A stretch of DNA of 61,772 nt, the filler included, from Bipalium vagum (Eukaryota), in the NCBI GenBank assembly GCA_037834085.1. It is 3 parts of 3 records of this genome, joined end to end, with 100 filler letters (N's around TTAATTAATTAA, not from the genome) between each part and the next. Parts side by side here need not be neighbours in the genome. Positions count along the whole stretch, not along the records: positions 43,487 to 61,772 come from JBBMKC010033868.1; 2 more parts are not named here. One strand, 5' to 3'. Shown piece after piece: positions 43,487 through 61,772 of the stretch (the stretch's first letter is position 1; each line of letters starts with the position of its first letter). The position numbers and the translations under genes are program-made. A model generated the notes under the pieces. It was not told the DNA's origin. It made no database searches and was given only the letters and a program-made list of their open reading frames with translations.

Positions 43487-43567
<81 letters not shown>

Positions 43568-43570
43568 TAT
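43487..43570. repeat. (ATT)n microsatellite at contig start
   Basis: Direct observation. Confidence 0.95.
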
Positions 43571-46500
43571 TAATATTTAAACAATCTTTTTTTATTATTC
43601 AGTTAACAATTATCCTTTTGAAACCGAAATATTTATTATCATAAATATTTTTCTTTAGTAATATTAAAATTTGACTTCAAATTATTTATTATAAATTTTT
43701 CATTTCTTCTCTGAAAAAAATTTTATATATTTATAATATATTTTTCATATACTTTTTAATTTATGTATTTTTTCCAAAATGAGTTATAATATAACTAATT
43801 TTTTCTACATGTCTGCATAGTTATGTCATCGAAGACCGGATAATTAAAAATTAGAGAAGTTGTTATTAATTCGTATTAATTTATTGGTCAACGGTTTAGT
43901 TGTAGAATAGTAAACTAATTAAATAAATCAAATGTGTCTTTGATTAACTTATTTCATTTTTATTTTATTTTAAATTCTATTTTTTAATATATATAGAAAA
44001 GGTTCATAAAATTTTTAATGAAATTTTTTTCCAAAAAATTAATTTTTTTAATTTAATATTAATTTAAAATGTTTAGATTCATGTTTTAATTTTTTCTATA
44101 TGATACTCATGTAAAATATTTTATCTGAAATTTAATAATATTTTTCATTGTGTTTTTTAAAGCTGTGTTAATTTTTGTTTGATTTTTCATTTATAGTAAT
44201 GATATTTTAAAATTATGAAATAATTATATCTACAGATGTAAATATAACATCACATTGTCTTAACATAATAACAAAGAACTTTGATTTTATAAAAACTATT
44301 CATTATTTTTATTTATATTATCTGTTATATGTCATCTAACACAAATATATGAGCCTATTTTATATAAAATAATAAAATTGATTTTCTTAATATTATAAAA
44401 AAAGACCTGTGTTTTAAACAAAACTGAAATTATAAAGATGAGAGATTTTCTTTTATCTTTGTTTTAGTGGTTGAAATTATTTGTAATACGAGAAGGATAA
44501 TTATACATCGAAATTTGAAGGAGAAAATAAATCGCTTTTTAATTTATTACTGACAAAAGTAAATATTTACCAAGATTTTTGAGATGTTAAATTGAAGCTG
44601 TGAAAATAAATCATTAAAACTGGATAATGTCTACGGATATTTATACTTATTCTTTTAATTGGAGTATGACATTAAGGAAAAAGAGGATAATTTAAAATAC
44701 TATTAAACAATATAATGAAATAACATAAATAATTATAATATCATATAACATATATGAAATAGAGAGTACATAAGTATAAAATTTCCCAGGAAAATTTAAG
44801 TATCAAACGCAAGATTATTAAAGTTTTGAATAATTGAAGACATTGATTACTTTTCCAATCATAAATAACTTTCATGTGCGCATTTATAATTAAAATGCAA
44901 AGAAAGTTTTCAATTTTTATGGTTGCTGATAAAAAATAGTGCACAATATCAACACTTTATTAAAGAGACGCTTTGAAACCTTTGCATGTATTTTGTTATT
45001 CTTTAAAATTAATTTCAGATTTTACATTATCTGCTTGATTCAGTCTTTTCAGTCTTGATTCTTCCGACTCTGCCTCCATGCTTCTGTGTTTTCTCTCATG
45101 GTACTTTGATCTTCTCAGATTATTGTTTTCTTTGCGTTCATAAAGTTGTTTCAGTGCTGATACGAACTTCCTTCTCAATTCGCATTATTGATATTCTTTC
45201 TGTTCTCAGCTATCACACACTTTGTCAATATATCACGCCTGTTCATGGAGATTTAGTTGGTTCAGATGTTGGTTTGATTTAAGTTTCGTACTGTAGTTTT
45301 TGGTAGTTTTCTGCATGAGCATTCTGCCAAATCTTTACCACTCTCGGTTTATTTATCACATATAATAAAGACCCCAAAACGCAGTCAAAACACCCAGTCA
45401 GTAATACGACAGAAAATTCTGGATAAGAAATAATTGGAGTACTCAATTAAAATACTTATGCTTAACAACTTCATAAGAATACAAAGACGTTTATTGAAAG
45501 TTCAAAGTATAAGTAAAGGTTAATAATTTTTGCAATGCAGTACAATAGATGTTATACTAGCCTTGCTTATTATATATATGCATGGTTTTGAAGACCAAAT
45601 ATTTTATAAAGACTCGAACATTTTTCTTACTCGGAACAAAGGAAGCCACTAAAAATAACTTATTATCTGCAAAATAAAAAAATCACTATATAAAATGGAT
45701 ATTAATAATAATAAAACACGGATGAATTTTGTAATATTTATCACTTAAATTGAATATTAAAAAACCGAGGTTACATTCTGACTTTGTAAATTCTATTATT
45801 GTAAATTCTATTAAATTCTATTACTAAAACTTACATACAATTTACAATATTTAATAAGAAGAGTCAACTTCACGGTTTATCTTGAACCCTTTGATAAACC
45901 GATTTGAAAATGTAGAACACATTCCATCGAGTGTTTTTCAACTTCTTGAATGTCCAATTTGTTTATGAAAACAATTTAAGAAAGACTCACTTTTGATCTG
46001 TCTAACAAAAATCACTGATAAGAGAAGATAGCATTTTTTGTTTATTTAAAGGTAAGAGAGATCTTTAATGATTTTCCTTTCCGAAAAAAAACAATACTAT
46101 GAAAAGAAAAGCAACTGACAAAACGAATTATGTCGATGAAATACCTACAATTGATCGGATAAAGAAATAACATTACTCTTTTATCACTAAGGTTTTCTAA
46201 CTACCGAGCTCTCGAATCTTAACAAACTTAAATGTAACCTCTGATGGGTACATCACCTGGATTCCATCTAATACAACCACAACAACATTGACCACTGCCG
46301 TTTCGGATGCTTTATCAAAGATACCAAAGAAAGGATAACAAGATTCACCTTGTTTAATGACAACATCTTTCAGTTAACAACAACATCTAATTTTCTAAAG
46401 GAATTGCGTTATTATCATAGCTTGTATTATCAATATATCACTCCCCTTAAATTTTATTTATCAAAATAGGGCTGATCTGGCACGGGATTTCTGGGTTAAA

Positions 46501-47524
46501 TTAAATTTCTCCCGATTTCTTATTTTAGCAGTAAAACACTTTTATAATTAATTTCCATTCTTCCGAAGGAGAAGTAACAACCTGAAGTCGGATTTCTGAA
46601 ATGGCTCGTGTTTATGATGAAGATTTTAACATATTTTTCGCTGTAAATTTTTTAGCTTTGTACCAACTTTTTATTACATGGACTTAATTAACGGAAATTC
46701 ACAGAGGCATTTCATTTTCAAGAAATTTCGAGAAAATATATTAAAAAATATTTTTAACATTAGAAAGAAATTTTTAAAATAAAATGAATGAATCCATTAA
46801 ATTAAACAGGAATATAATTTTTATTCTTTTTATATGATTAATTTTTTTATGAAAAACGATCTTTGACTATTAATAAATTTATAACCGGTCTTAAAATTTA
46901 TACAGAGAATAATGTTATAAGGTGTACAAGTTAATTTTCGCGTTTTTATTAAGTTTTATGTTATTTCGATAAATCAATATTTTTGTTTAATTAACTTTGT
47001 CTTATTATTTTCGCCATATTATCAGCTTTCCATACACACACAATAATTTTCATATAACTGTATGTAACATTTTAGTTTTAATAATCACCTTTTTTAAACA
47101 TCTTTTGATTTATAAATAAAAAAATAATTTTTAATTAATTTATAATTAATTAATTATTATGATTTTAAAAATATTTTTATTTAAATTTTAATATTTTAAA
47201 AATTCCGTGTGATAAATTGAATATTTTATAGTTAATAAAAATAATGATAGTGCAATTTTTAAATTATTTAATTAAAAAATATTAAAAAACATTTATTTTT
47301 TTATTCCAACTTTTTACGAACCCTGTGTGATATATTCAAAGATAGAATTTTAAATAAAATCAATAGGAAATAAAAAAGTTAATCAAAGAAGCCTTTGATT
47401 TATTTAATTAGTTTAGTATTCTGAAACTAGACAGTTAACCAATAAATTAATAATAATTAATAAAAAAATAAATACAAATTAATAAAAACTTCTCTTATTT
47501 TTAATTATCCGGTTTTCGATGACC

Positions 47525-47559
47525 TATAAATACGCAGACATTGTTAGAAATAATTAGTT
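47525..47559 (+). promoter_or_regulatory. TATA box plus initiator-like element for the peptide precursor gene
   Basis: TATAAATA at 47525-47532 in a CCTATAAATACG context and TTAGTT about 30 nt downstream. Confidence 0.55.
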
Positions 47560-47649
47560 ATATTTTATCATATTTTTTGGAAATTTATATGAATATAAAT
47601 TTCTAAAATGTTTTCAGAAAAGAAAAGAAAAAGTTAAATAAACCATTCT

Positions 47650-48184
47650 ATGGTAAACATCATATTTTTTCTTTTTAACAAACATTCTTTAGGGAAAATG
47701 AAAATAATAGAAAAAAAGAGCAAATATGGAAATTGCTTTATTAAAATATTTAATTATTCAGAATAAATTTATTTATAATAATAATAAGATCAAAGTTAAG
47801 TATATATTTTTTAAAATAAATAATTAAAATAAAATTTTTGTAATCAAAAATAATATACAAACCTCAGTATTTTTTTAAAATTATTATTTACTTTATGCTA
47901 AATATCGTACTTTATATTTCAATCATATATATTTTTAATAACTTTAGAAAATATTCGCGATATTGTTAGGAATGGTTATGTTAATTACGTCGGAAGAAAT
48001 GGAAAAGAGACCGGTCAGTATGCCTTTCTCATGGAAGAGTTATTATCAATACTACAAAAGACCTGTTTCAATGCCATTTCCTTGGTGGAAATATAATGTC
48101 AACTTTATGGACAAACGGCCTGTCAGCATCCCCTTTAGTTATTGGAAATATCATGGTTACACCCGACCAAATTGGGAAGCCTAA
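47650..48184 (+). CDS. Putative secreted peptide precursor (prohormone-like), join(47650..47652,47948..48184), 79 aa
   Basis: ATG|GTAAAC donor, TTTAG acceptor; MKIFAILLGMVMLITS signal-peptide-like segment, EEME spacer, three KR-PVS(M/I)PF repeats with synonymous codon divergence; TATA upstream, AATAAA at the stop. Confidence 0.85.
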
Positions 48185-49299
48185 ATAAACTTTATAAGAA
48201 ATGAAATTCTTTCATGAATTTGCTTTGATAATAAATTGGAAAATTGTTAAAATAATTTATTTTGAAGACNNNNNNNNNNNNNNNNNNNNNNNNNNNNNNN
48301 NNNNNNNNNNNNNNNNNNNNNNNNNNNNNNNNNNNNNNNNNNNNNNNNNNNNNNNNNNNNNNNNNNNNNNNNNNNNNNNNNNNNNNNNNNNNNNNNNNNN
48401 NNNNNNNTTTTTTAAAATATGTTTTACAAGATGTATGATATTTTAATATTTTTAAAATTAAAGAATTCTTTTTCAAATATATTAAAAATTTAATTTTAAA
48501 TATGAAACATTTCGAATTGAGATGTTATAAAGAGAGTAAATAAAATATTTAAGTCTTGTGTCATATTTTAAATAAAAAAATTAATATTAAAATCAAATCT
48601 ATAAGAAGAAAAAAAATTAATTGATTAATAAAAAATTACCGATTTTCACAGATTGTATTAAAAATATATAGAAAAAACTAAAAAGCTAAATACATAATAA
48701 TTATAAGAAACCATCATTGGGTATTTAAATTTTAATTTATAATCCACACAAAAAGTATAAAAATTATATATTATATTAAGTATATTATTTCAAATAAGTA
48801 GCAGCCTTTGGACATATTCGAGGATTTTCATATTTCATTTGGTATTAATAAATAATAATTTATCTTTGTAGTTTTTCCATGGGTGATATCAAGAATATTT
48901 TATAATAAAATGAAAATAAAAAATAATAGATATTTTTATAATAATATTAGAGCTTTTTTAGAATTTTTTAAAGTTTCATTAAAAATCGATCTCAACTTAC
49001 CAAAAAACCAAATAAAATCTTTGGTAGATTACACCAATTCTCAACTCAATATAAGATTTTATTACCTCTCATGATATTTTTAATTTTTTATTTTCAAATC
49101 AATTTTGTTTCTCATAACATGAACTTTGTTTTACATGTGAATGTGATTAACAAAATAAATCAACTTCGTCTTTAAGATTATTTAAAAACGAAAATGTGTT
49201 TATAAATTCTGCTAGAAATTATATTTATACTTTTATCCTGAAAAACAGCTTTACTGGAATAAAAATTAACAGAAAAATGTCAACAATGTCAACAACATA

Positions 49300-52200
49300 C
49301 ATGAGTGGCTGAAAAGTTCTGCAAATTTTTAAGACAATGATTTTGTTAAGATAGCTTTTTGTGGAGCCTTCCTCAATTAACATTTATTTTTTAGTGATCC
49401 GATAAAAACACTTAAACGTTTTGTTGTTTGTTGTGATTTTTATATTGTGAAATTAAAACTGTCAAAGAAATTTAATAGTCTTTTATTTTAATATCATTCT
49501 AGTATTTTATTATTATTATTATTATTAATATTATTATTATTATTAATTATTATAGTAATATGAAAAAACAAGGAAGATATAAAAAGTATGAAATTATTAA
49601 AAATCGATATTATGAACTGCTATTTATAGAAAATAATAAAATAAAATAATAAGGATTTCTAAAAATAGAAAATTAATAAAATAAATTTTATATTTAGGAA
49701 ATAAGTTTATAAAAATAAAAATCAGATAAAAAATATGTATTTAAACGAGAAGTATTGAACGAAAAATCAGAAGAAAAACGAAACACAAAGATCAAATATA
49801 GCACCGGGGAGTTTAAATTTTTGAGGTGACGTCACAAGGCTTGACTAGATACTAATACCAGTAAATTAGTCTGGATATAAAGAGTGATCTCCATCGCCCC
49901 CTCGAGTGATCGACAACGCCTCGAACCCGGCTCCCCCGGAAATTCTGGAAGTTGATGTGGACGGTCTTGAATCGGATTTACTTTCTCCGAACCGGACAAT
50001 TGATCTTGGTGTCATTAACTTCTTTGGTGGCACAGATCAAGAAATGCCGGTCATTGTCGTTGCCCTCTCTGTCGACCTGCTAAAGTATGCTCACTGCACA
50101 AAAACATACGCAATAAGATATGGAAAAAGTATTAATCACAACAAGTACCTTAAGCAGGTCCATAACATTAAGTTGAGCGACTCGCAAATTTACAAGTGCA
50201 TCTGCGAGCTGATCCTCAATCGCGAGGCTTTCTTCCCTCATGTTGCCTCCTATCTGAAGATGCCAGCTCCATCCTCCACTTTGACTCTTGATCATATACC
50301 TGTCAGCATAGAAGACAAAACGTCCAGCTAACTCGGGAGGAATGCAATCGAAGTCTACCTGCGGGTCAACATACAAGACCCTTCTGTTGTATTTATTAGG
50401 CCTTGGCATGCGATTGCCCTCATGCAGAGGAATCCAAACATTGACTCGGACCATATTTTGGGATTTGCTTGGCGAGTGGCTATCCAGCTCTTTCTATCCC
50501 GTTTCTCTGAGAAAGCGCCAAAATCGACAGTCTTTGTACACAGAGAGAAGATGAAAAATTCGACCTTCCACCTCAGACAGCTTCCTCGAGCTCCTGCTGA
50601 ATAGCAATCCAACCTCGCCACCAATTGACACACGCCTGCACCTGGCCCTGAAATCTCGAACGTTCACTGGTCTCCGAAAATCGGTCGATGCTACTCAAAA
50701 ATTCTTCTTCGGCTCCCGAGGTGAAGATGGAATGACGAGTTCAGATTGGTCGCACTTTTCAATCATGTGTTGAAACATGGGCGGATTCTCAGAGGATGGC
50801 GATCCTTGAAGACCACATTGATCCTGAAGCCAGGCAAAATCAGGTTTTTGCACCTCGTCAGCTCCTGGAGACCCATTACAATCTTAGCCTCGTCCTATCG
50901 TATCCTGGCTCTTCTTCTAAATAATCGCCTATTAGAGTGGATCGTTTCGGTTGTCCTCTTCCACCGTAACCAAAAGGCAATCCATTCACAAAACGGTTGC
51001 GGCGAACTTAATGAGATCATTGTTGGACTCAAGAAATACTGCCGCACTATCCAGAAAGAATTTCGCGTGTGCTTCTTGCATGTGGCGGGGGCATTTCCTA
51101 GCCTGCCACACGAGCTCATCTGACTCACTCTTCGTAAGTCTGGAATGCGGACATGGACGGTAACCTTTTAAAGAACATCTATAACAACAACTCCACCTTC
51201 TATGTATGCCACCATCTCATCACGTCATCCATTGCCATACATAGAGAGGTTAAACAGGGCTGTCAGCTGTCCATGTCCCTATTTTGTTTGGCAATCAATT
51301 TCCTGCTGAACCACTTTAGTAACTATCCTGGTTGCCTTCAGGTCTTCAATGATACGTTTGATTGCCTTGCGTATATCAATTATATTGCGGTTTTTTCTCC
51401 TTCTCATGAGAAATTGCAAACCATGATTGATGCGCTCAGCTGCTTGACCCATATCTATCTTTCCCTCAACTTAAATGGGGATATCTATGTCAGGGTGCAC
51501 CTCCGGCTCCTCTCCTGTCCATGGGGAACCAATCCCACCGATTGATCCCACTCATGTCTACTCATATCTTGGGGTCACATATGGTACCAACCTACGTACC
51601 AAGACCGATGAGATTCTGGAGAGGAATCTCTCGAACTTCTCACATATTATCCTATCTAATCTTCATCTGGCTCAGATGATCCATATCTACATGACCTTCC
51701 TGCATTCGCGTCTCCAATTTCAATTTGCGAATCGGGTAGTAGATCATCTTACTCTGACGTCAAAACAATCCCGCCAATCCCTTTACCGAGAACAACAGAA
51801 GGGTCGAGAAATAAATAAATTTTTATTGTTATTCCTTCTTCTTTTTTACTGTTCATAGTTTACAGATTTGCTAGTTGGTAAACTACCAAGGGCTTTAGCG
51901 GACTAAACTAAGTTTGCACCTAAATATATCTGATCTTTGACAGTTTTTAATTAAATAATAATTGTAAAAGATTTTTATTGTAAGAAATTTACAAATAAAT
52001 ATTTTAAATCTAAGTGTTCTTTCAATTAATATTTTCTTCATTTCAGTTGTGATAGTAAAGTGTAATTGTTGTGCTTTAAGCGTTTATCCATAAATAATTG
52101 TTATTTGGTTGAGTTAAATAAAAGTCCCTACATCGATTTTCTTAATCCAATTAAACTCATATATATAATTTTAAGAACTTAACATTTTAATGTAATAATA

Positions 52201-53090
52201 ATAGAATAATTGATTTCCCCATAAAATTTTTATACGAAATTTACTATTTGTTTGTTTGTTTAATTATAGTTAAATAAATGATAATGATTCAAAGTAACAG
52301 AAGCATAATAATTGAATTGTACAACTTGGAATGAAGACAGGTGATATCATTAAAAGAGGTGGTATAAAGAAACAAGCGGTATATGATGAGAATACAATCG
52401 ATTCAAAGAGACTGGTGGAATATTGGACCATCCTCGTACTGGTCGCTCTTCTTCCGCAACAACAACACAGTCCAAAATATTGTTAAAAGCAAGCTTGGGA
52501 TGCGCAGTTACAAGATAAGTCGTGTTCACTTCCTCAATGATGAAATGAAACTGAAGTGACTGCAAAAATATCGAACAATGAAACGCCTGATTGCAAGTGG
52601 GAAGTTAGTGAAAGTTATCTTTCACTCTTCAACAGGACTGGGCAACGGTTTATCCTACGAAAATCTACAATTTGTAGTTATGAAAACTTGTTTCCCAGCA
52701 TTTGGGGAAATGAATTTTGATCCCCATATTCATCAGATCTTAATCCGATGGATTTTTCCGTTCTGTTTATCTTGGCGAAAAATATCAATATTCAAATGCA
52801 ATAACATAGATTCTCTCAAAAGGCCCTGATCTCTGTGTTGGATTATATAACAGTGGAACGATGTGCGGCCATAGTTTTGAATTTTCCGAAGCGCCTTAAT
52901 TTATGTATTGAAACCGGTTGAGGCAATTTTGAACATTTATTGTAGCTTTTCGTTTATAATTATTATTATACTTTTAATAAATGACTGTTACTGTTCAGAC
53001 TTGTTGATTAGCTGGTTTATATAATATTTATATAATAGTTATCAAGTTTCAAAGTACTTTAAAAAGTTCGGAAACTTTTCAGCCACTCTG
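49300..53090 (+). mobile_element. Tc1/mariner (maT/rosa-like) element enclosing a non-LTR retrotransposon
   Basis: TIRs GAGTGGCTGAAAAGTT / AACTTTTCAGCCACTC flanked by TA; YNRFKETGGILDHPRTGR and PPYSSDLNPMDFSV remnants at 52.3-52.9 kb. Confidence 0.75.
49800..51860 (+). mobile_element. Decayed single-ORF non-LTR retrotransposon (R2/NeSL/R5-like), 3' truncated
   Basis: GC-rich block; N-terminal zinc-finger-like remnant; WRPITILASSYRI, NQKA...NGC, AFPSLPH, VKQGCQLS, YINY (decayed YADD), YSYLGV; several frameshifts and stops. Confidence 0.88.
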
Positions 53091-54165
53091 TACACACTAT
53101 CATAACAAAACTGAAAAAGAAAGTTTTTCAAAATAGCTATAATTTTAAAACAAATATATATCAAATAAAACAAAAACTCAGATAAATTAAAAATGGGAAA
53201 AAAATTCTTAAAACTTAAAATGAAGAAAGAAGGAAAAGCATTTGGCTTAATATATCGGTAAAATCTTGTAAACTTTTAATAATAAATCTTATCGAAGAAA
53301 AATTAATTATTTGGAAAATGTTTGTCAGTTTTGTGACATGAGTAATGAAAATTGGGATAAAAAAGATAAGGAGTCCAATTTAACTTAATTATTGGGTTGA
53401 ATATTTTCCCATGTCTTTCTATTGAATTAAAACAACAATATTTCAGAATACGTTTTGTTGTAGTCTTGGCATAAATTTCTGATGAGACCCCCATATAAAT
53501 TTTCACAAGAATCTCTAAAATAAAGGCCAATTATTTTCCCATCACTCTAGCAAAACTGAAAATGACTTCAGATTTTTGTCCGCTTTATAAGAAAACTCTT
53601 CTTTCACTTCATAAGGCGTCCGAGCAATGCTAATTATTTCTTTCAATAACCAAAGGATTTTTAATTATTTGTAAAGGATAATAATATCCAGACATCCCGT
53701 AGAAGACATTTATTATATGAAGAAGTTCAGGTCTTAGAAGTGAAGTATAAAAATTATTTAGTTGTTTTAATTAACGGTGAAGATATAAAATAAAGTTATT
53801 GAAATATTTTCGTTTTTTGAAAAATTAAAATGAAAGCGTTAAATTTGTTAATTAAATATTATATTAGATATACAAATGAGTTCAAATTTTTTCTTTAATA
53901 ATTATCAAAGTTTGCTACCATTTTGAACTCTTTTATTCAATACTCCAAAGTTGTTTTTGGAAGGGCATAATTTTCTCTGTTGATAGAAAAGATATTAAAT
54001 AACCTTTAAGACCTTCTTCTAGGAAACCAAATAATTTCAACTTTTAGTTAAAAGATATAAGTGAAGAGTTTTAAGTGGCTAAAAATTCTAAAACTGCATA
54101 AATCATCCTTCAAGTCAATAATGTATTTATAATTTATTGCAAATTACAAAATAAAACAGATAGAA

Positions 54166-55010
54166 TCATGTTTTTTGACCGAAATTTAATATATAAAATC
54201 TTGTATTAAAAGATGTTTTTGTCGATAAGAATACAGGTTTCGTCGGACCCTGGTATGTCAGTCCAACCCATACCATCACTTTCAAAGGATATTTTCTTTT
54301 TGAAAAAAGTTCACCTTTTAAATTTGCATATTTTCTAGACACAGCATAAACGACGTTGTTGTGTGGATTAAACTGACTATCTGCATCAAAAGATTTTTCA
54401 TCACTAAAAATAATTTTGTTCACTGCCTGTTTGCTAAATCTATGTCTTAACAAACATGAGCACGTCTTTCGTCTATTGATTTGGGACTCAGATAGATGGG
54501 GAACTTTTATTTTCCTGTAGCACTTATATCCCAAGTCATTATGTATAATATTTCCAATAGGTTCCTCTTGAACATTTGAAATCTAAAGCTAATTTTCTAA
54601 CTGATTTCTTTTTTTTTGTTTTTTGTAAGGTTTCTGTTAATTTTTTGATAAATGTTTTCGTTCTTAAGATTCTTGGACGTCCAGGGGAATTTCGAGCAAG
54701 TAATGATTTTTCCTCTTTTATTAGTTTAGTCCATCTATAAATAGTGGACTTTGGTACCGTTTTTGCTACAGCTTCATAAATTTCTTCAGATGTTTTCCCA
54801 TTTTCATAATGGGTTTAAACAAATTTCTTACACAGCTCTCATACGTCATTATCTAAAAGAAAATATTGCTAAAAATAACGTATGCTTATTTTGCAAAATA
54901 TTAAAAATCTTGGCATAAATTAAATCAATTAATAATTCAAATTTAAATTTTTTTAGTTTAAAAATAATGTATTTAAACAATTTGTTATTCTTTATTGGCC
55001 ACGCGTTATT
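54166..55010 (-). mobile_element. maT/DD37D-like transposase 5' part
   Basis: IIFSDEKSFD...NPHNNVVYA...KVMVWVGLTYQG. Confidence 0.85.
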
Positions 55011-57249
55011 TATTTATCTATTTTTATAAAATCATAAGAACAATAAAGGGTCAATAACCTTCAAGGAAGGAGTCAAGGGATTGTATCATGACTCACTCTC
55101 TCATCTACACGGCAATATTTCTGAGGTCAAAAAGTGATAAAGCAGTGGGATTTTTTGTACATATGGTTATTTTCGAAATAATTACGGACTGGTGTGCTAA
55201 GGGAGTTGCGAATTTTCGATTCTAGACTCAGATAAACCTTTTATGTGTGTGAATGATGATTATGTGTTGTATTCTGTGCTGCCCAAGATTGATGAAAAAG
55301 AGAGAAATAAAATAAGTGAAGATCAAAAAGAAATATGAAAAAAATGGTGCAAAGTGTTGCTTTTTCTAATGGACACGTTTATTTAGAGGTACCTTGAATT
55401 TCTTTGAATTTGAAAACATAATCAGTAATAATTATAGTAATAACAGACTGTTTTTCCTTAAAACATAATTGCATAGGATGGAATACCCATCACCATGCTG
55501 CTTATTGATTTAATTTTCATTTCTTTAATATTAACATCAAAAATTTGAGATCGGTCAAAAAGAGACTTGATGTCAGATACCGATCAAAAAAGAGACTTGA
55601 TAGTCATTTCTTTAAAAAACATGATTCAACAAATATTAACAAAAAATAATTTAATAAAATTTATCTTATTAAAACATTCAATTTTGTTACAGAAATATTA
55701 TTATTATTTTTAATTATTAAATTTTTATTTCTTCTAGAAATTTATATAATAATAATATTTTAAATTGTATAAAAATTTTCAATATTTTCATAAGTAAGAA
55801 GCATTCTAAGTTATTGACAATTCGATTTTCTAAACATAATGATTTACTTAAAATAAATAATAAATATAAAGGATTTTCTTGTCAAAGTAAAGATTACTGA
55901 ATCTCAACAGGAAGATGAATATATTTGAAAACTATTCAAATCTTATCGAAAAATATATTAAAGAAGAATAATAAATTTATAATTATTGAATTTCTACCAC
56001 ATATGTTGTTGACATACCATATTTATATAAACATAATAATAAATTAAAATATTATTAATTTTAAATAATTGTATTTTCGCTAATTCATCATAGATTATAT
56101 TTTTTTACCAATGTGCAAAACCGTAAATAAATCATGAACATTAAATTACTTCACAGGAACATGTAAATAATTTAATTAAAGCTTCTAAAGAGAAATGCTT
56201 TCCTACGTCAAATGCGAGACGCCTTACATCATTCTTTTTACACTTTTACATCAAAAATAGAGTTTCTTTGTTATGGATCTAAGTCTTTTATTTATTTTCT
56301 TTGTACATGGTCATTTAAACAAATGAACATTAGAATTAATCTGTTTTTTTCTTTTCCCAAAATAGACCCTTTAGATGGTAAAGAGAACCAATGTGTAAAG
56401 GAAAAGTTTAGGATAATTTTTCATTAAATTCTGTTTTTAATTAAAATATAAATTTCAGTTTCATGATCAAACCAATAATCTCTAATTATTTTTTTTATTT
56501 ATCATTTATTTTTCCAGGTAATTTAAACAAAAACGTTTCATTGAGAGAAATGTATTTTTTTCGAAAATTTATTGCTGTTCTCATCTTAACTATTAATTAA
56601 AAAAATTTTAGAATTAATTTCGCTTATTTTTACATGAAGTGTGTTTTTTATTAACAATATAATTACTATTGAAGTAATTAATAATTAATTTTAAAGCTTA
56701 AAATTTACAAATTAATTTTTTAATTAATCTAATTTTTAGATAAAACCAATTTAATGCTTTATTATACAATTTTTTAAAAATATTAAAAATATAAGAAATC
56801 TATTGTTCCAAATGAAAATAGTTAGAGGGTGTATCAAGAGTCACTATCTATTACAACAAATAATTGAAATCTTTCAAAACTTTAAATTAACAGAAAATAA
56901 AGTCTTTTAAAAATATTATTATTATAAAAATTATTATTCAATTATTATTCAATGTTTTTGTTTTATTTTACTAATTTATTTTTTCTGGTCACAATCTATT
57001 ACTCAAAATAATTGATATTAATAAAAAAATTTAAATTTATAGAAAATAACGTCTGTTATTTATTTTTTTCGTTTTTGGATATATTAAATTGTTCGGAAAT
57101 AAATTAGCGTTTTATATAAGTCAACTTTCGATGATTTTATTGTATATAAAATACGTATGAATGACATCATATGATATTCCAAATTGATGCTTAGATGATA
57201 AGGATTCATATTCTATATTAATTTGTTTTACTGCTTTAAATCTAAATGA

Positions 57250-57725
57250 TAGTTAATAAAAATGAATACGGAGAACTAGTATTCGTAGCCATGCGGAAAA
57301 TAAAAGGAATGACATACGAAAAAATTATATATAAATTTGAAAGAAAAATTCAAATAAAGACTATCAGATAAATCTGTTCGTCAGTTGTTGATGAAATTTC
57401 CGAAGACTGGTTCTGTTCATAATATTAGTAAAAGTGTTAGTAAAGAAAGTCTGGAGAAAGAAACGAATTGGTTAGAGAAACCTTTGAGCAGAAACCACAA
57501 ATGTCGATTCGTAAAGTTGGCTGTAAACTTGTTACAAATTTCACATATGTTCATCTACAGAGTCCTAAAAACTGTTCTGAAGAAAAAATTCTATCATCTT
57601 CAAGTTTTTCACAGCCTACACGAAAAGATTATCCCCGCAGAGCAAATTGAAAATTCCAATTTAATGAACAACATTTTGATGAATCAACCTTTCACACTTG
57701 CGGAAAAGTTAATGGTCATTTTAAA
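57250..57725 (+). mobile_element. rosa/DD41D-like transposase fragment
   Basis: KFPKTGSV, VRETFEQKPQMSIRK, YHLQVFHSL, DESTFHTCGKVN across frameshifts. Confidence 0.75.
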
Positions 57726-57829
57726 ACAAGATTTGATCAGTAAATCTTTCAAATAAGATATATAGATTGTGTGAAAAGTTATGAAAGAAAAATTTATTTT
57801 TTATTGAAATTGATTTTATTATCGGAGAT

Positions 57830-59000
57830 AATCTCCTAACAATTCAACACACTTAGTACAGTTCTTTTCCAATAAATCTATACCGTATCTAAAGTGAAAT
57901 TTCGGAAGGCCTGCGAAATAATGGTATATCGGTGCCATAACTTCTCAATTATTTTAGGATTCTAAAATTATAGATGTTACCGTAAGCTAAATCTTGAGAA
58001 AAGGTAGTTTCTCTATCAAATAATTATCTAATTCTTTGATTTCTGCCACTGATAAAACACACTGTCCTTATTAAAAAATTTTTTCTGTAAACCAGGCTTG
58101 TACATTAGTATGAATTATTAGCCTTGCTTTTCCAAGTAGTTTATTAGCAGAACATCTTTGACATACAAAAAACTGTTGTCATTATAAGGTATGATTCGAA
58201 CAATTAGTTAGCTTGAACTTTTTTAAATAAGGACCTCAGACCTAAATTAACAATTATTAAATGTTTTTGATTTAAAATTTTTAAAATTATAAATAAATAT
58301 TTTAAATATATATTAGTAAATTTTAAAAAGGTAAATAATTTAATTTTAAGTCCAAGTTTGAAAAGTTTGTTTGTTAACTGGATTTATGAAATATATTATT
58401 ATTGCTTTGATTTTGAATTCTTATTTACTAATGAATACAAAAGATTATAACAGTCATCACCATTTTATCGTTTGGGCTCTCTTCATCTGCTTTAGAAATG
58501 ACATTTAGTTTCAATTCACTGTAGACGTTCTCGTTTTAATTTAATATCATAGTGATAAATCTAAATTTCCTTTAAAGTTATGAAAAAAACAAAACTCGTT
58601 TTATTTGTATTATAAAAATCCAAAGTTTATTTATAAATTTGTTTTCTAAAAATATTTTGTTTAATTGATAAATAATGCCTCATTATTCTAAGGGAAAAAT
58701 TTCTTCATTTGTAAAGCTATTGAAATATAACGATACTGCTCTTCTGAAATGACCAAGGTTTCATAAATTTCAAGTCTCTTTACAGTGGAATCTTTAGGTA
58801 CAAAGTGTAAACTGTATGCATCGTCTGCAAACTTGTTCGACCACGTTTAAACTACAAAGCCCATTAAGGTACAGATTCTTTTATAATATTAACCATCTTA
58901 CTGTGAATTTCTGAAGCAGTTAATCATTAGGAAAAAACTTTGATCACTGCTAAAAATTACATTTTTTACACTAATAACTAAGTGATTGATTCAAACAATA
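57830..59000 (-). mobile_element. Fragmented mariner
   Basis: EIHSKMVN...FKRGRTSL near 58.85 kb and YFAGLPKFHFRYGIDLLEKNCTKCVELLGDY near 57.85 kb. Confidence 0.65.
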
Positions 59001-61708
59001 TTTTAAACGTGTTACTGGTTCTGCTAAAGTTAAGAATGTTCACTAATAGGTATTCTGAGATGACACTGTTTTCCACTTATGTATGTCTAATTTATCCATG
59101 ACATTAGAATTTGCATACAATTTTAGCTTGCAGTACTGTAGGCATTGGGGTTTTAATTTTTTAATGTTAAATTTTAAGAAACCTAAAAAGATAATTTAAT
59201 ATGAAAATGATAATGATTATTAATATTTAACCGGGTTAAGAATATCGATAGTGAACTTTTTAGGAACTTAACATAAAATATCTGCAAATTCAGAAGTATT
59301 TAGTGCGCGTATGTTCGAACAATCCGAGTGACAATAAAAATGTTGATTACTAAAAGTGAACTTTTCAAATTTATTAACAGATTCTGATTTCAAAACCTTT
59401 TAAGCTTTTAAATCGATAAAAGAAAAACTTTTAAAACGATAAACTTTCAATCGATATACTGAGATAACATGTTGATTTTTATAAAATATATTTTTTATAT
59501 AAATCTCACAACTTTATTTTTTTAATACAATTTTACTTTTAAGTTAAAACCAGAGATAAGGAGTTAATAGAAAAGTCAGATCACCCTTCGGTATCTTACT
59601 CTCAAGGGCCCTCAGATATAAATTCGGTTCTCCGTCCTACTTGACGTGAAGAACACAAAAAAAGAAAATACTGGGAAATAAGAAAAAGGATAACAATTAT
59701 TTGATCCTAAGGTATTGCAGTAGCTGTCCAATCCTTAGTATTTACTTAATTTAATTAATAACTTATAATTCATAATCGAATTATAGTTTTTAATTTTTAT
59801 TATTATGTTTTACTTAAGTATCGGTTCACCTGCGAACAGTTTGAAGCCAAAAAATATTTTATATTTATTTATTTAATAATAAAAGTTTGTTTAGACTTGT
59901 AATCAAATCTAATAAACTTGTCAAATTAAAATAATTTACTATTTATTGACGATTTCTCTTTGAAGCTGGTCACCGAGACGAATGATTATGTTTCGTAGAT
60001 TTTTCACGTGGACTTCCGAATTTACTATGAATATTTTTCCGAATAGGGTTGAGGATTGTCCCAAATATGACTCTGAATAGTGTTTGCTTTTCTCTGGTGT
60101 TCTTCGGGTTTTCTTCCTGATCTCTTGAATGCTTCAGACGGTATCCGTATTTATTTTTTGTCCTTCTTGTGACTAATTTGTGTGTGTGTGTTCATACTGA
60201 AATACTTCAGTATTTATATTATTTTATTTTTCAATATTTTTAATTATAGTAACTTAATGTTACTATTTTTAGATTTTACCTTAAAACTTTTTACTATAAA
60301 TTTATTTATAGTAACATTGATTAAAAATTTTTTATAAATTACTCATCAAAATGATTAATTTTTTAATTAATTATAATAATAATTTTTTATTTTATATATA
60401 TTATTATATTATTTTGTTTTATATTTTATATTCTTTTTTATATTTTATATTAAACAGATGAGAAAGAGAATTATTAAAATCAAATTCCGGGTTTTAACTT
60501 TTACAAATAAATAAAATTACAAAAATTATATATTGTTTTTTATACATCAAATGAATCACTAAATAATCACTAAAATGTTTAAAATCAATAATGTTATTGT
60601 TTTGAGGGTTTTGATTGCTTTGGCTGGATTGACATTTTTGAAGGGTTTGGTTGAATTGGTTTGTCAGAAGGTGAGAGTCTCCACATTAATATATACACAC
60701 ATTATACACACATTAATATATATAATATTTATATTACTTTTAGATCTTCTTGTTCTGCAACTTTTCTATTATCATGGAGTTTCTAAGCCATTAAAAAATG
60801 ATATTTTTTAGTACCTTATTTAATTCTTTTTATTTTCTTTTAAATTTAGACTATCTTTTTTCATATTATTCTCAGTATTAGTTGTTTAATCGTATCATTG
60901 ATGATCTTTTCCATTTTCATAACTGGATATGCATTCTTTGTTAATCTTCGCTTAATACTCAGTATACCATCTATATATTTGTAGTCTTTATTAAATCATT
61001 TTTATATTTTTCTTCAAGGAAACTATTATTTGAAGCATATTCTCCTGTATTCGTCTTTTGTCTAATATATTATCGATCCAATTCAGTTTTAAGCCATTTA
61101 TATAGCAAAATGTAAAATTTTTATTTTAATAAAATCAATTTAAATCTATTTGAAACTCTGTTAAAATACGTGTTATTTTTCTGAATAATACAATTAATGT
61201 ATAAAATTTAAATTTATTTTATAATTTGATATTTCTTATTGAAAACATAATGCCAAAATGTATTATAAATACTCACATCAGGCACTCCTTGTTGTATAAA
61301 TATGATCAAGACACCATAGCTCACAAAAGATTCTGAAAAAAATCTTTTAAATTAATATAAATATAAAATAACTTGTAATCAAACCCTTCGATAAAATAAT
61401 AAAATACTTTAAAATAGATAAGTTGCCTGGACTTTTGTATGATGAACATTCTTAATTCATCGTTTAAATCTTCTTATCGCTTTAGTTTTTTCATTTTTGC
61501 TTCTTAAATATTGACTTTATATTTTCATTATATTAAAATCTAAAATTATCCATTTTCTATTACTATTTTATTTATGCTTTTTCGGTTATGTGGTCATATA
61601 CACTGCACATGATCCTTTTCTCCATCAGCATGTTAAGCCAATAATAGTTCAACTGGTATCTCATGATTTAGAATGGTACTGTTTTTCTACATATCAATAA
61701 TAATATTG

Positions 61709-61710
<2 letters not shown>

Positions 61711-61772
<62 letters not shown>
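61711..61772. repeat. (AAT)n microsatellite
   Basis: Direct observation. Confidence 0.95.

Follow-up and report, generated by a model that had tools for sequence, protein, structure and literature searches.

A likely spp-20-type neuropeptide precursor gene from a planarian, encoding three PVS(M/I)PF peptides

The window analyzed here is the whole stretch of 61,772 nucleotides, filler included, and the piece of it that holds the locus covers positions 43,487 to 61,772. This piece carries a real, intact prohormone gene, which is probably unannotated in its genome. On the plus strand, the sequence at 47948-48184 reads KIFAILLGMVMLITS-EEME-KR-PVSMPFSWKSYYQYY-KR-PVSMPFPWWKYNVNFMD-KR-PVSIPFSYWKYHGYTRPNWEA-stop; the open frame at 47948-48181 (exon 2 of the gene model described below) encodes 78 residues and ends at a TAA stop codon (48182-48184). 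Three KR-PVS(M/I)PF units are present in the product, KR-PVSMPF twice and KR-PVSIPF once. The frame opens with the predicted body of a signal peptide, KIFAILLGMVMLITS (47948-47992), which is followed by the acidic spacer EEME and the first KR cleavage site (47993-48010). Behind this site come peptide 1, PVSMPFSWKSYYQYY (48011-48055; 15 amino acids, predicted [M+H]+ 1945.88), the second KR site (48056-48061), peptide 2, PVSMPFPWWKYNVNFMD (48062-48112; 17 amino acids, predicted [M+H]+ 2157.99), the third KR site (48113-48118), and peptide 3, PVSIPFSYWKYHGYTRPNWEA (48119-48181; 21 amino acids, predicted [M+H]+ 2598.26), all on the plus strand. With a predicted signal peptide and three KR sites between three paracopies, the product has the generic form of a multicopy prohormone-convertase precursor. 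Neither the KR sites nor the stop codon is preceded by Gly in the exon 2 product, and the peptides contain many aromatic residues (Y, 15%; W, 9%; F, 8%). A six-frame scan of the whole piece found no second copy of the peptide gene. The original prediction had described a signal-like start, EEME, and three KR-PVS(M/I)PF units in 78 residues, framed by AATAAA, and the sequence is as it described: one AATAAA (48184-48189) overlaps the plus-strand stop codon, so that the two occupy 48182-48189, and a second AATAAA polyadenylation signal lies at 48230-48235. A run of 138 N's at 48270-48407 starts 86 bases 3' of the stop codon and could hide the end of the 3' untranslated region (UTR).

An in-frame TAG at 47945-47947, whose last two bases are the acceptor AG, keeps the frame from extending farther upstream unspliced. 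We listed every upstream ATG from which a phase-0 GT can be reached with no intervening stop. The nearest of them, ATG/GTAAAC at 47650, is the only one that yields a canonical signal-peptide layout. This ATG (47650-47652) runs straight into the donor GTAAAC, and the AG acceptor at 47946-47947 (TTTAG/AAA) follows a T-rich tract. In the proposed model, the start codon forms the last three bases of exon 1 and contributes Met only, and it is separated from exon 2 by a 295-nt phase-0 intron (47653-47947, plus strand). The spliced N terminus has an n-region of MK, a 12-residue h-region, IFAILLGMVMLI (mean Kyte-Doolittle value, 3.09), and a short polar c-region, TS; the residue at position -3 of the proposed cleavage site is Ile, which is not the most typical one. 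From the acceptor to the first internal ATG there are eight codons, which spell the hydrophobic KIFAILLG, and the h-region is present in the spliced model only. Read unspliced, the frame has no usable start before the ATG at 47972, and only MVMLITS would then precede the acidic spacer, too short a stretch for a signal peptide. The Met-only first exon (ATG at 47650, 295-nt intron) is the best gene model, a prediction that we hold to be probably correct.

Upstream of the start codon, the original prediction had seen a lone ATG and one TATA box. The ATG with its GT donor and the TATAAA at 47525-47530 (plus strand; a candidate TATA box with a putative function, 120 nt 5' of the start codon) are indeed there, but the ATG is not alone and a second TATAAA was missed. 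This second TATAAA lies at 47594-47599 on the plus strand, 51 nt 5' of the ATG, and two further ATGs, at 47589 and 47608, open upstream open reading frames of 5 and 9 codons, respectively, between the 47525 TATAAA and the start codon. Transcription starting some 30 nt 3' of the 47594 TATAAA would begin past both of these ATGs. There is also an acceptor-like site, TTTTCAG/A (47611-47617), in the presumed 5' leader downstream of the 47594 TATAAA. One might speculate that it could be the acceptor for a leader exon or for a spliced leader. The upstream open reading frames, the acceptor-like site, and the 47594 TATAAA could point to a start site farther downstream, to an intron in the leader, or to spliced-leader trans-splicing.

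Elsewhere, the piece resembles transposon debris. Fragments of a reverse transcriptase (RVT_1) occur in several frames below the Pfam cutoff, at 50725-51120 and 51138-51542, and reverse-transcriptase fragments span about 49.9 to 51.9 kb. A block of 40 to 51% GC inside DNA of about 20% GC occupies 49835-51860. That interval looks like a decayed non-LTR retrotransposon with a composition strikingly unlike that of its host. On the minus strand, an HTH_23/HTH_32 transposase N terminus (54544-54814) and, in another frame, a DDE transposase-like open reading frame without a Pfam match (54169-54582) together look like a Tc1/mariner-like transposase remnant (54169-54814), for which no clear terminal inverted repeats were found. 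A similar HTH-like open reading frame, also without a Pfam match, lies on the plus strand at 57358-57753. Simple AAT and TAT microsatellites are typical of very AT-rich DNA. Here, they occupy 61696-61772 and 49503-49553, with about 26 and 17 copies, respectively.

Exon 2 stands out from its immediate surroundings in composition, with a GC content of 37.5% compared to 15.9% in 47000-47947 and 26% in the whole piece; the noncoding parts of the piece have 16 to 20% GC. No other stop-free stretch in the AT-rich zone from 46 to 49.5 kb is as long as its frame. The three repeat units are only 62 to 71% identical at the DNA level. In the 8-codon KRPVS(M/I)PF cores, 8 of the 24 nucleotides differ in every pairwise comparison, and the codon differences comprise 16 synonymous ones versus 2 nonsynonymous ones, both of the latter being the Met/Ile change in copy 3. 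The Ser of the core, for instance, is encoded in three ways (AGT, TCA, and AGC). In a simulation that placed eight random substitutions on the core and scored amino acid retention over 200,000 trials, the observed conservation was reproduced in 0 of 200,000 trials for one pair of copies and at a frequency of 8e-5 for each of the other pairs. The peptide cores are under purifying selection. This synonymous-only pattern of change in the cores is direct evidence of translation of the frame and of selection on the peptide sequence, and a chance open reading frame was rejected.

The same evidence bears on the reading that the gene is an unspliced, single-exon one or a fortuitous frame, with either a start at ATG 47972 (MVMLITSEEMEKR...) and no signal peptide or no expression of the region at all. 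A 761-base stretch of the locus is contained in only one public sequencing run, from 2024, which is not on record as RNA, and no RNA run among the public runs searched contains the locus, as a silent region would have it. AT-rich DNA readily yields frames rich in Ile, Phe, Leu, and Lys, so the hydrophobicity of KIFAILLG could be due to chance, and all three plus-strand frames are fairly open across the GC-richer patch. However, change confined to synonymous positions in three cores is unexpected for noncoding DNA, and MVMLITS is too short to serve as an h-region, whereas the spliced model gives the canonical n/h/c layout. The product also matches a secreted peptide family verified by mass spectrometry (MS) (PMC4825013), and we give the unspliced or fortuitous reading hardly any weight in comparison with an intact, spliced prohormone gene.

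Searches of general databases placed this prohormone in no family. Pfam-A returned 0 families at an E value of ≤10 for exon 2, and a word-indexed search of 5.8 billion proteins gave 54 word-sharing candidates for exon 2, none of them with an E value of ≤0.1 or ≤10. An exhaustive HMMER search of 1.84 billion representatives yielded two matches only, both of which we read as spurious low-complexity or repeat matches: one (P0001) is a translated satellite-like repeat, and the other (P0002) is a GRKIAYPFGW-repeat protein. Protein patterns found no relative in metagenome contigs. A degenerate DNA pattern for KRPVSMPF hit at least 120 loci in those contigs, and among the matches listed none had a second PVS-x-PF motif, for which reason they are read as chance matches. 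Rfam, run on either side of 47805-47840, detected nothing on the piece. The strings PVSMPF, PFSW, PFKW, PFPW, and MPF are absent from the main text and supplements of Collins et al. 2010 (PMC2953531), and this type of locus is therefore not among the original 51 planarian prohormones. Literature string searches for variant cores gave nothing relevant.

A full-text literature search with the core hexapeptide led to Ong et al. 2016 (J Biol Chem 291:8109; PMC4825013), who named the spp-20 family. In Schmidtea mediterranea, they sequenced PVSMPFKWADYYKFQ (m/z 1907.3) by tandem MS (MS/MS) in unmodified form and reported it as an MS imaging marker of the cephalic ganglia (PMC4825013). The peptide maps to dd_Smed_v4_1178_0_1, which is spp-20; according to the main text and the legend to Fig. 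6, spp-20 has a signal peptide and several encoded peptides, its mRNA occurs in the brain and as peripheral puncta throughout the body, and other planarians possess homologues (PMC4825013). Table S2 of the same paper lists dd_Smed_v4_1178_0_1 as having “No signal peptide,” contrary to the main text (PMC4825013). The assembly of this transcript may lack its first codon or codons, which would agree with the model proposed here, in which the start codon sits on a tiny exon of its own. Moreover, spp-20 ranks in the top six prohormone genes for the effect of RNA interference (RNAi) on brain regeneration, and after sublethal irradiation its knockdown lowers both the number and the size of stem-cell colonies (bioRxiv 10.64898/2026.10.10.758126).

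Peptide 1 and PVSMPFKWADYYKFQ are both 15 residues long, and 9 of these 15 are identical (PVSMPF, W8, Y11, and Y12), with a BLOSUM62 score of 60. Over the nine residues after the hexamer, the similarity exceeds that of all but 0.8% of shuffles (tail P of about 0.008). The calculated [M+H]+ of unmodified PVSMPFKWADYYKFQ is 1906.92, which fits the published 1907.3 and supports both cleavage between KR and Pro and the lack of amidation in the spp-20 family. On the strength of this one published 15-residue peptide and the shared architecture, the locus appears to belong to the spp-20 family. The original prediction had inferred a secreted, nonamidated multipeptide prohormone with KR-Pro cleavage, and this view is strengthened, since the S. 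mediterranea homologue starts at the same Pro, is unmodified, and is expressed in the brain (PMC4825013). Its claim of an unrecognized family does not survive, given that spp-20 has already been named and a PVSMPF peptide is known from MS/MS (PMC4825013). By that prediction's own standard, under which a match to a named prohormone counts against novelty, the locus is not novel in kind.

PVSMPFKWADYYKFQ itself is absent from the frame at 47948-48184, and the locus is therefore not the described S. mediterranea spp-20 gene itself. For S. mediterranea, public DNA and RNA runs are very numerous, and its spp-20 transcript is well expressed. Because only the single run from 2024 holds the locus, we take it that the locus comes from a different planarian, in which the gene is the spp-20 orthologue. 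The very AT-rich DNA, with its reverse-transcriptase and Tc1/mariner-like debris, is compatible with a planarian source but is not diagnostic of one. We are quite confident of a spp-20-type neuropeptide precursor, most likely the orthologue in a planarian distinct from the S. mediterranea strains that are commonly sequenced. An alternative is that the locus is a paralogue (“spp-20-like”) in S. mediterranea or a close relative, perhaps silent or expressed at a low level. The lack of the published MS peptide from the encoded product and the lack of the locus from public RNA runs would both fit a paralogue, and a peptide with an IPFSWW core from dd_Smed_v4_9673_0_1 hints at a wider family (PMC4825013). 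Yet S. mediterranea is richly sequenced, and only one run, from 2024, holds the 761-base stretch; in addition, the locus has an intact frame with cores under purifying selection. We consider the paralogue unlikely and proceed with the orthologue.

By the model favored here, exon 1 would supply the 5' UTR and the start Met and exon 2 everything else. The signal peptide, M-KIFAILLGMVMLITS, would route the product via the endoplasmic reticulum into the secretory pathway, where a PC2-type convertase would cut after the three Lys-Arg pairs and a carboxypeptidase would trim the basic residues. The MS data on the S. mediterranea homologue support this KR processing step. The released products would be three nonamidated, Trp/Tyr-rich peptides of 15, 17, and 21 residues with the common N-terminal core PVS(M/I)PF-x-(W/Y). 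If it behaves like S. mediterranea spp-20, the gene would be expressed in the brain and in peripheral neurons, and the peptides would act as intercellular signals via a receptor. A secreted peptide could also have a nonneuronal role, as an antimicrobial, mucus, or adhesive component or as a pheromone, rather than being a neuropeptide; the absence of amidation, the unusually high aromatic content, and conservation at the N terminus rather than at the C terminus would suit such a role. What makes it very improbable is that in S. mediterranea the brain and peripheral puncta are enriched in spp-20 mRNA, that the peptide is an imaging marker of the cephalic ganglia (PMC4825013), and that the spp-20 RNAi phenotype groups with those of other neuropeptide genes (bioRxiv 10.64898/2026.10.10.758126). 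These points argue for a neuropeptide precursor. The conserved part of its peptides is the N terminus, and the C termini vary, which suggests N-terminal recognition. Conservation of the N terminus rather than the C terminus is less common among neuropeptide families. From the sequences, we tentatively propose that spp-20 peptides, with free, variable, and nonamidated C termini, may be defined by a strict PVS(M/I)PF-x-(W/Y) core that might form an N-terminal pharmacophore, possibly for a lineage-specific receptor linking neurons to stem-cell behavior. If this is true, the three natural variants found here constitute a structure-activity series for finding that receptor.

What is new is a further precursor of the spp-20 family, together with its three peptide variants and a proposed gene structure, and not a new kind of signaling molecule. 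spp-20 is among the few planarian-specific neuropeptide genes with MS evidence, brain expression, and RNAi results that tie them to the regeneration of the brain and to the expansion of stem-cell colonies, and only one spp-20 peptide is printed in the literature searched. The locus reveals which residues are constant, namely, KR-PVS(M/I)PF and then Trp or Tyr two positions on, and these residues can aid the design of synthetic peptides for receptor deorphanization. The gene structure aids annotation in other flatworm genomes. With a Met-only first exon, as proposed, finders based on open reading frames would miss the signal peptide. The locus also helps to explain the absence of the spp-20 family from protein databases.

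Mature peptides with Pro as their first residue, immediately behind a dibasic site, as in those proposed here, are known from CCAP and from the molluscan pedal peptide/orcokinin type. CCAP, a PFCNAFTGC-amide nonapeptide with two Cys residues, was ruled out as the identity of these peptides, as the exon 2 product is without any Cys, and so was the pedal peptide family, as the peptides lack the P-x-D-S...G-F core. Like generic PC2-processed multicopy neuropeptide precursors, such as the 51 planarian prohormones, the product combines a predicted signal peptide, an acidic spacer, and dibasic-flanked paracopies; unlike them, it has no C-terminal Gly amidation signal, and the N terminus rather than the C terminus is conserved (PMC2953531). 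A looser resemblance is to AKIPFSWWHNL, a peptide listed in Table S2 for S. mediterranea from dd_Smed_v4_9673_0_1, a precursor listed with a signal peptide (PMC4825013). Its IPFSWW core resembles the IPFSYW and MPFPWW found here, although it comes from a different transcript and lacks the PVS prefix; it is a possible distant member of the spp-20 family and a lead only. The closest likeness is to S. mediterranea spp-20. Both are small precursors with a signal peptide and processing to several peptides, each predicted in the present case, and the family is planarian restricted. In a comparison made on the one published peptide, 6 of 15 residues differ, but the two peptides share PVSMPF directly after the cleavage site, W8, YY at positions 11 and 12, a length of 15 residues, and a nonamidated C terminus, the published one being unmodified.
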